A stretch of 63,817 bases of DNA, counting the filler, from Reticulomyxa filosa (lineage: Eukaryota > Protista > Foraminifera), in the NCBI GenBank assembly GCA_000512085.1. It is 27 parts of 27 records of this genome, joined end to end, with 100 filler letters (N's around TTAATTAATTAA, not from the genome) between each part and the next. Parts side by side here need not be neighbours in the genome. Positions count along the whole stretch, not along the records: positions 13,298 to 16,228 come from ASPP01029378.1; 26 more parts are not named here. The stretch is one strand, 5' to 3'. The translations under genes and the position numbers were made by a program. Numbering within the stretch: the stretch's first letter is position 1; every line of letters starts with the position of its first letter. Under the pieces are notes generated by a model, which saw nothing but the letters and a program-made list of their open reading frames with translations, was not told the DNA's origin and made no database searches. This document shows, in pieces, positions 13,408 through 13,474 of this stretch.

Positions 13408-13474
13408 GGCAGCATACCTTACTTTAATTAGAAAGGTTTCGCCCCGCCATTGGGCTCATCAGTGCTGCCAGGCG
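13408..13474 (-). ncRNA. Hammerhead ribozyme, type I (HH-A); predicted GUA cleavage between 13415 and 13414
   Basis: Minus strand: GGCAGCA CUGAUGA GCCC-AAUGGCG-GGGC GAAA CCUUUCU-AAUUAA-AGUAAGG UA UGCUGCC. This gives a 7-bp stem I, 4-bp stem II, stem III and a fully canonical core. Confidence 0.93.

Follow-up and report, generated by a model that had tools for sequence, protein, structure and literature searches.

Hammerhead ribozymes are common in eukaryotic genomes. A locus of the foraminifer Reticulomyxa filosa (assembly GCA_000512085.1) that carries a complete hammerhead raises a wider question: does this ribozyme stand alone, or does it belong, with similar modules around it, to a larger RNA that they process together? 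The window, meaning the whole stretch of DNA presented, is 63,817 nt long and was joined from 27 parts. Our analysis concerns one of these, positions 13298–16228 (ASPP01029378.1, hereafter the piece), outside which the window consists of N or other parts. The hammerhead modules of the piece and the evidence used to define them are as follows.

13408–13469, minus strand: HH-A, a continuous type I hammerhead (sequence, MFE fold, descriptor against shuffles, pair table)
13515–13623, minus strand: long hairpin of local pairing, immediately after the HH-B core in the RNA, formed by CGUAU/AUACG and GCUACUGAAG/CUUCAGUAGC (folds, inverted repeat, sequence reading)
13621–13657, minus strand: predicted enzyme strand of HH-B (identity to HH-A, pair table)
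13921–13951, minus strand: HH-C, a degenerate third core (sequence)
14456–14468, minus strand: predicted substrate strand of HH-B, ACGG-UC^UGCUCUU (7 + 4 bp, shuffles, compensatory changes)
14608–14619, minus strand: copy X, where the helix I 3' strand module UGCUCUUCCUUA occurs again (direct repeat, three-way alignment with sites A and B)

The continuous hammerhead HH-A

Read along the minus strand from 13469 to 13408, HH-A has the sequence GGCAGCA / CUGAUGA / GCCC-AAUGGCG-GGGC / GAAA / CCUUUCU-AAUUA-AAGUAAGG / UA / UGCUGCC. The initial annotation had described a complete canonical type I hammerhead here, with the core nucleotides CUGAUGA, GAAA and UH all present, a 7-bp stem I, a GCCC/GGGC stem II and a GUA cleavage triplet that would define a 3' end at 13415, and the minus-strand sequence and pair table bear out each of these points. 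Helix I consists of seven perfect pairs between GGCAGCA (13469–13463) and UGCUGCC (13414–13408). Between helices I and II, the core positions C3 U4 G5 A6 N7 G8 A9 are complete (CUGAUGA, 13462–13456), followed by the 4 bp of helix II (GCCC/GGGC) with their loop AAUGGCG (13455–13441) and by the GAAA that includes G12 A13 A14 (13440–13437). Helix III is a hairpin, CCUU.CU/AG.AAGG with loop AAUUA (13436–13417), made up of 4 bp, a U.U and 3 bp. U16.1 then falls at 13416 and A17, a non-G as position 17 should be, at 13415, completing the GUA triplet; the G10.1–C11.1 and A15.1–U16.1 pairs are both present, and every invariant core position is found. The predicted cut lies between 13415 and 13414, where the annotation had put it. 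Its span, 13408–13474, holds at the lower end, while the upper end lies 5 nt past the last helix I pair (13469). HH-A belongs to type I, as loops cap helices II and III and helix I is left open.

Folding and motif statistics agree with this assignment. The HH-A structure is exactly the unconstrained MFE and centroid fold of the 101 nt from 13490 to 13390, a window whose fold z-score is −1.4. A type I descriptor (helix I of at least 5 bp, helices II and III of at least 3 bp each) run on both strands of the piece matched HH-A and nothing else, and a comparable type I motif appeared in only 5 of 20,000 dinucleotide-preserving shuffles. In Rfam, HH-A scores 24.4 bits with RAGATH-1-hammerhead (cut-off 56.3) and 24.2 bits with Hammerhead_3 (cut-off 48.5), both below the gathering threshold, which is a criterion of curation and not of structure, and these models were trained on other hammerhead subfamilies. 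The Hammerhead_3 alignment (13499–13431) would make HH-A a type III hammerhead. We rejected this candidate, since the helix I hairpin that it needs does not form beside the core, whereas type I pairing gives seven unbroken helix I pairs. Past these pairs, a CCU/CC internal loop leads into a further UACG/CGUA helix. Natural type I hammerheads touch loop II with elements of this sort, and the arrangement here is suggestive, though only that, of such a contact. At the sequence level HH-A is almost certainly a true hammerhead of type I, and it is probably active. Taken alone, it simply adds another, ordinary member to a class of ribozymes that is ubiquitous.

A predicted split hammerhead and its degenerate relatives

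The second core, HH-B, lies 188 nt upstream of HH-A in the RNA and matches the HH-A core with 87% identity over 38 nt (13660 to 13623). Both contain an exact 15-mer, AGCACTGATGAGCCC (also written AGCACUGAUGAGCCC), which is present twice against 0.07 expected occurrences. No similarity was detected in the sequence around the two cores, and the retention of the core while its surroundings differ suggests constraint on the core. Its enzyme strand comprises a helix I arm GAGAGCA (13651–13657), CUGAUGA (13644–13650), a GCCC/GGGC helix II with loop AAAGGUA (13629–13643), GAAA (13625–13628) and a helix III arm CCGU (13621–13624).

No helix I partner for this core was found downstream or locally. The long hairpin at 13515–13623 could supply a local helix III ending in GAGUA, with A17 at 13511. 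We considered the GUA at 13511 as a substrate and rejected it, as the AAAUAAA that follows cannot pair with GAGAGCA. A GUC upstream, at ~13831, was likewise rejected on reading the sequence: helix III is present there and helix I is absent.

A fitting substrate strand lies much farther upstream in the same RNA, ~790 nt from the enzyme strand. Here C17 is 14463, the triplet is GUC and cleavage is predicted at 14463/14462. In a scan of the whole minus-strand RNA of the piece, only 14463 gave 7 + 4 bp with the arms of HH-B. Sites with at least 7 bp in helix I and at least 4 bp in helix III for HH-B occurred in 93 of 20,000 shuffles, but never together with the CCC flank (0 of 20,000); under a looser criterion, any split of at least 11 pairs, 74 of 5,000 shuffles had one. 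The flank is a further likeness between the two hammerheads, in both of which helix I is preceded by CCU and followed by CCC.

The arms of the two hammerheads differ in a coordinated way. Three pairs show two-sided compensatory changes from HH-A to HH-B (2.5–1.5, C–G to G–C; 2.6–1.6, G–C to A–U; and 15.4–16.4, U–A to G–C), and a fourth is altered on one side only (G–C to G.U). Core A pairs with site A, and core B with site B, by 7 + 4 bp (helix I + helix III), whereas either cross pairing gives 4 + 2. Each core is thus, by its predicted pairing, specific for its own site and a poor fit to the other.

Thermodynamically, HH-B is the less favoured of the two. It is absent from the unconstrained MFE structure, and forcing its fold in a 1,111-nt RNA costs 3.9 kcal/mol out of −387; nearest-neighbour equilibrium probabilities are ~2% for the helix I pairs of HH-B and ~45% for helix I of HH-A. 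What a discontinuous hammerhead calls for is found in the sequence: a complete core on the enzyme strand and, far upstream, a substrate with a helix III arm, UH and a helix I arm. Because the core has no local helix I partner and a matching substrate lies ~790 nt upstream, we read HH-B, known here from predicted pairing, as a discontinuous hammerhead of type III topology with a giant helix I.

The remaining two modules look like relics. HH-C has AGCACUGAU and GGCGAAA in common with HH-A and HH-B, and GGGCGAAACC matches there with two mismatches. It reads CUGAUAG, with G8 and A9 swapped, and has neither a helix III nor a UH site. As an active ribozyme we rejected it on account of the swap and of its best substrate candidate, which offers only 3 + 6 bp; HH-C is presumably dead. 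Copy X has no GUH triplet and no helix III strand in front of it, and for these reasons we regard it as a relic or decoy. The three cores share one orientation and are spaced by 188 and 293 nt. Judged from its sequence, the locus is a small family of hammerhead modules at differing stages of decay, all in one orientation, and is itself partly decaying.

Some further complementarities and repeats were seen around these modules. Copy X with its 5' flank (14614–14625) is complementary at 10 of 12 positions to 13645–13656, which covers the HH-B helix I arm and the start of the core; pairing of this alternative kind might keep the HH-B core in an inactive state. In addition, 14640–14653, in the 5' leader ~180 nt upstream of site B, and 13383–13396, 18 nt past site A in the 3' trailer, form a 14-nt pair with 93% complementarity. 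Such a pairing, which alone is not beyond chance, could clamp the two flanks. The motif UAGAAAGCG recurs at ~14598–14590.

The GC-rich block and its setting

All of these modules lie within a single GC-rich block. The block, the features defined within and beside it, and the nearest gene are listed here.

13298–14900, no strand assigned: GC-rich block holding all hammerhead modules (composition, ORF and Pfam searches)
13415–14462, minus strand: predicted released RNA of 1,048 nt (inferred from the two sites)
14464–14900, minus strand: 5' leader upstream of site B (sliding-window z-scores)
14905–14912, minus strand: TATATATA, bordering the block on its 5' side in the ribozyme strand (sequence only)
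15249–16070, minus strand: two-exon gene for a Cys-rich protein (homologues across the splice junction)

The block is ~50% GC, as against 22–40% in the rest of the piece; the switch at ~14900 is abrupt, and on the left the block ends at the edge of the piece. Its dinucleotide bias (CpG 0.74, AG 1.36; chi-square 34.7, 9 df) shows that it is not random sequence. No ORF in the block exceeds 96 aa under the standard code and none is convincing under any NCBI genetic code, and Pfam searches with 10 block ORFs gave no match. The block contains no tRNA, and Rfam searches of both strands found no other ribozyme class or known RNA at E ≤ 10 except noise. No LTRs or tandem repeats of a whole unit were found in it, the 38-nt core being the only direct repeat apart from small modules, and the tRNA primer-binding site pattern of retrozymes did not occur in it above chance. 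Exactly at the switch from AT-rich to GC-rich sequence lies TATATATA (14912 to 14905); that it serves as a TATA box or other promoter element, or marks an insertion target, is speculative.

The block is also highly structured. Nowhere in the piece is structure stronger than in the leader at 14464–14900: sliding windows gave z = −4.4 to −5.75 there on both strands, those between 14198 and 14797 reached −4.3 to −5.75, and the fold of 14900 to 14330 gave z = −4.58. The predicted 1,048-nt RNA between the two cuts contains the HH-B core and nearly all of HH-A. Folded as a circle, it reaches −363 kcal/mol at its MFE, where shuffles give −333 ± 6.6 (z = −4.6), and 64% of its bases are paired.

Beyond the AT-rich edge, the gene for the Cys-rich protein has a first exon from 16070 to 15806, a 168-nt GT..AG intron (15805 to 15638) and a second exon from 15637 to 15249. 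Its product of ~217 aa carries the motifs PCN..C, GGC..MC, FGVRRRS, HKFYNCGCDC and YECW.CFGKGG. When the exons were used separately as queries, an exhaustive search with exon 2 returned three homologues (42–46% identity, E = 1e-22 to 1e-28) that belong to an unnamed family. These are continuous across the predicted splice junction and exon 1 aligns too, so the intron is real and points to a eukaryote, or possibly a eukaryotic virus, as the origin of the sequence. The gene matched no Pfam family, gave no match in the word search or the Atlas, and had no relative in IMG/VR. The three homologues lie on short ocean-metagenome contigs of 28–31% GC that are rich in orphan ORFs, and none of these contigs has a hammerhead or a GC-rich block or is recorded in IMG/VR. 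From this absence the block looks like an insertion specific to this locus. On the contig of the closest homologue (L003:4299–4820), again of 28–31% GC, the ORF adjoining the homologous gene is a fragment of a PEMT/ICMT-type methyltransferase and the other ORFs are orphans; this contig could come from a protist or a giant virus.

Relatives of the block itself were sought with several kinds of search. Neither of two core patterns matched in viral contigs or GTDB genomes, blastn against phages and plasmids found nothing, and sequence strings led to no relative in the literature. One core pattern had two matches among metagenome contigs. The first, L001, is probably a chance match. The second, L002 (Ga0316037_100074, 1–3209), carries a type III hammerhead on its minus strand (2050–2108, 43 bits) and, on the opposite strand, a Hairpin-meta1 ribozyme (1675–1746, plus, 56.9 bits, above threshold), together with ambisense ORFs of 517, 186 and 179 aa that have no Pfam match; from these features it looks like an ambivirus-like circular RNA element. 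Helix II of its hammerhead is one base off that of HH-A and the arms differ, and the likeness, which is within chance for a 27-nt core pattern, is probably coincidental. As these searches found no relatives of this single locus, neither covariation in an independent copy nor a copy number or a target-site duplication can be brought to bear.

A candidate ribozyme-bounded RNA element and its alternatives

Directly observed at this locus are the motifs, their pairing, the covariation between HH-A and HH-B, the lack of coding capacity and the excess of structure. The reading that we favour, and hold with evenly balanced confidence, is that the locus encodes a retrozyme-like, ribozyme-bounded, non-coding RNA of a non-autonomous mobile element. 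An inserted element fits because the block is 50% GC beside DNA of 22–40% and is absent next to the homologues of the neighbouring gene. What we infer, along the following lines, is cleavage, release, circularisation and mobility. HH-A would be the 3' member and HH-B the 5' member of a related hammerhead pair on the minus strand of an insert of at least 1.6 kb. The substrate strand of HH-B would be transcribed first and its enzyme strand ~790 nt later, whereupon the RNA would be cut at 14463/14462; HH-A would cut the 3' side of the transcript at 13415/13414. The structured 1,048-nt RNA released by the two cuts together would begin with a 5'-OH (14462) and end in a 2',3'-cyclic phosphate (13415). 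Such ends would be a substrate of host tRNA-type RNA ligases, and the RNA may be circularised. The ligated junction would fit core A by 4 + 4 bp and core B by 7 + 2 bp, and we speculate that a circle matching neither core fully might be protected from re-cutting. The excision model leaves one feature unexplained, in that the structured GC-rich block runs ~440 nt past the 5' cut and at least 117 nt past the 3' cut.

The predicted length is in keeping with ribozyme-bounded circRNA elements in general, which span 150 to >1000 nt (PMC7229834, PMC6155905). Among these, the LTR retrozymes of plants (Cervera et al., 2016; PMC6155905, PMC7229834) resemble the locus in that two hammerheads bound a GC-rich, structured, non-coding RNA, of 600–1000 nt in plants, whose ends are ligatable after double self-cleavage. 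The locus differs from them in having two ribozymes of differing topology instead of identical continuous type III hammerheads. Plant LTR retrozymes also have two ~350-bp LTRs, each with a type III hammerhead, a tRNA-Met primer-binding site and a polypurine tract, and no LTRs, primer-binding site or polypurine tract were detected here. To our knowledge, all described retrozymes use two equivalent continuous ribozymes. The pairing of a split with a continuous hammerhead is, on the sequence of this one locus, a plausible new variant. We suggest only tentatively that it represents a new kind of element, a ~1-kb non-coding RNA excised by sister hammerheads of unlike topology (one split, with a 790-nt domain, the other a continuous type I), with arms co-varied to their own sites and a circle resistant to re-cleavage.

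The main alternative, possible though doubtful, is that the modules are decayed repeat debris. Type I hammerhead units, once set in an old array or mosaic that belonged to a retrozyme, a satellite or a Penelope-like element, would have degenerated with the sole exception of HH-A, and the match of core B to site B would be a legacy of one continuous B-type hammerhead that rearrangement split. The three cores in one orientation at 188- and 293-nt spacing, the three site modules and the clearly dead HH-C and copy X all have a natural place in such an account, and HH-B, with a good local helix III ending in GUA and no helix I, is what one would expect of a unit losing its 3' arm. Moreover, metazoan type I hammerheads usually occur in 150–450-bp tandem repeats (PMC7229834). 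Several observations argue the other way. No similarity is detectable among the supposed units outside the hammerhead modules. Core B and site B retain 11 of 11 pairs and the CCC flank, whereas neutral decay should erode an orphan site, as seen in copy X. Finally, a tandem array would not run site, site, core, core, core plus site, as the RNA does here.

Comparison with the non-LTR retrozymes and satellites of metazoans (Schistosoma Sm-alpha, newt satellite 2, coral and mussel repeats; PMC7229834, PMC4209133) shows both likenesses and differences. They share with HH-A the type I fold, a helix I of 6–7 bp followed by an internal loop, and a helix II of 4 bp whose purine-rich loop begins AA(A/U), and with this locus a setting in non-coding DNA with several copies in one orientation. 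Their helix III has 1–2 bp, whereas that of HH-A has 4 + 3 bp and is stable, so that a dimer is not needed. The helix II loops of HH-A and HH-B may be compared with that of Schistosoma, CAAAUA. Metazoan retrozymes form tandem units of 150–450 bp with <45% GC and yield products of 170–400 nt; here there is no tandem unit, GC is ~50% and the predicted product is 1,048 nt. In place of head-to-tail 150–450-bp repeats, each with a type I hammerhead, we found cores 188 and 293 nt apart with unrelated sequences between them. A decayed array of the metazoan type is nevertheless conceivable at this locus. A ribozyme-bounded element remains our preferred reading, and two further accounts of the block may be set against it.

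We consider it improbable that the hammerheads serve the upstream gene for the Cys-rich protein, processing its 3' UTR or a read-through transcript in the manner proposed for Clec2. Gene and hammerheads do share a strand, with site B 786 nt downstream of the stop codon (15249–15251), and the topology of HH-B equals that of the Clec2 hammerhead (PMC6155905). However, several AATAAA signals follow within ~70–250 nt of the stop codon in an AT-rich spacer, so that the block is probably outside the normal 3' UTR of the gene; the homologous genes on other contigs have no block or hammerhead downstream; and the sharp GC shift at ~14900 suggests a separate inserted unit. The Clec2 hammerhead is otherwise the closest known parallel to HH-B. 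Natural discontinuous type III hammerheads, found in Clec2 3' UTRs (Martick et al., 2008), have a helix I of 150–1500 nt and are known from a single mammalian gene family according to a review (PMC6155905). Like HH-B, the Clec2 ribozyme has its substrate upstream and its enzyme strand hundreds of nucleotides downstream, with a huge helix I (790 nt here), and follows a protein gene that shares its strand. Unlike it, HH-B is next to another gene, in an AT-rich genome of non-mammalian look, with a continuous sister hammerhead 188 nt further on and in a GC-rich insert that is not evidently a UTR. Neither homology nor synteny with Clec2 was found, the neighbour being an unrelated Cys-rich orphan. 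HH-B thus resembles the Clec2 hammerhead by analogy of layout and falls outside that lineage.

It is similarly hard to credit that the block is a DNA copy, endogenised or produced by chimeric assembly, of a viroid-like, satellite or viral RNA bearing hammerheads. Its foreign-looking composition, strong structure, want of an ORF and ribozymes on one strand would suit such an origin, as would the tandem type I pairs 186–399 nt apart in mycovirus RNAs (PMC13725137) and the nature of L002, the only metagenome contig with a near-identical helix II and itself an ambivirus-like RNA element by its appearance. Set against this, ribozymes of every class are absent from the opposite strand, neither an RdRp nor any other ORF is present, the viral and metagenome collections hold no match beyond the 27-nt core pattern, the L002 hammerhead is a type III with different arms and a similarity within chance, and the junction with host-like AT-rich DNA is continuous in the piece. 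The same comparison extends to the Penelope-like elements of fungi and protists and to mycovirus UTRs (PMC4209133, PMC13725137). Their hammerheads, like HH-A, are of type I with a stable helix III and predicted activity as monomers, and the 188 nt between the HH-A and HH-B cores compares with the 186–399 nt that separates close type I pairs in totiviruses. The locus differs from both groups in that no RT/GIY-YIG or viral ORF lies nearby and the sequence is DNA beside a spliced, cellular-type gene. Of the RT and GIY-YIG ORF and the hammerhead-bearing pLTRs of a Penelope-like element nothing was found in the block, the left part of the element lying beyond the edge of the piece.

That the motifs match by chance and have no biological meaning deserves practically no credence: the Rfam scores are below threshold and the z-score of the 101-nt window is only −1.4, but only 5 of 20,000 shuffles contain an HH-A-like motif, the repeated 15-mer core is expected 0.07 times, and the matching distal site adds to the improbability.

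If the ribozyme-bounded element is what the locus encodes, HH-B would be the first discontinuous hammerhead outside the mammalian Clec2 genes and the first to take part in the processing of an element. The locus would be new in three ways, combining split with continuous hammerheads, giving them co-varied arms and setting them at either end of a structured 1-kb RNA. More routes to ribozyme-processed and possibly circular RNAs in cells and mobile elements would become known, and the locus would offer a natural case of site specificity between sister ribozymes within one transcript, in a simple and testable system. Should the modules be debris instead, the locus would still record a family of hammerhead-bearing repeats in this genome.

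One observation on the predicted RNA may be added. In its circular fold, the HH-A region at 13441–13484 pairs with 14264–14373, near the 5' end, through GCUGCC/GGCAGC, UCAUUGG/CCAAUGG and GCCC/GGGC. This modelled pairing recalls the way in which the hammerheads of viroids and retrozymes are sequestered in the mature circle.
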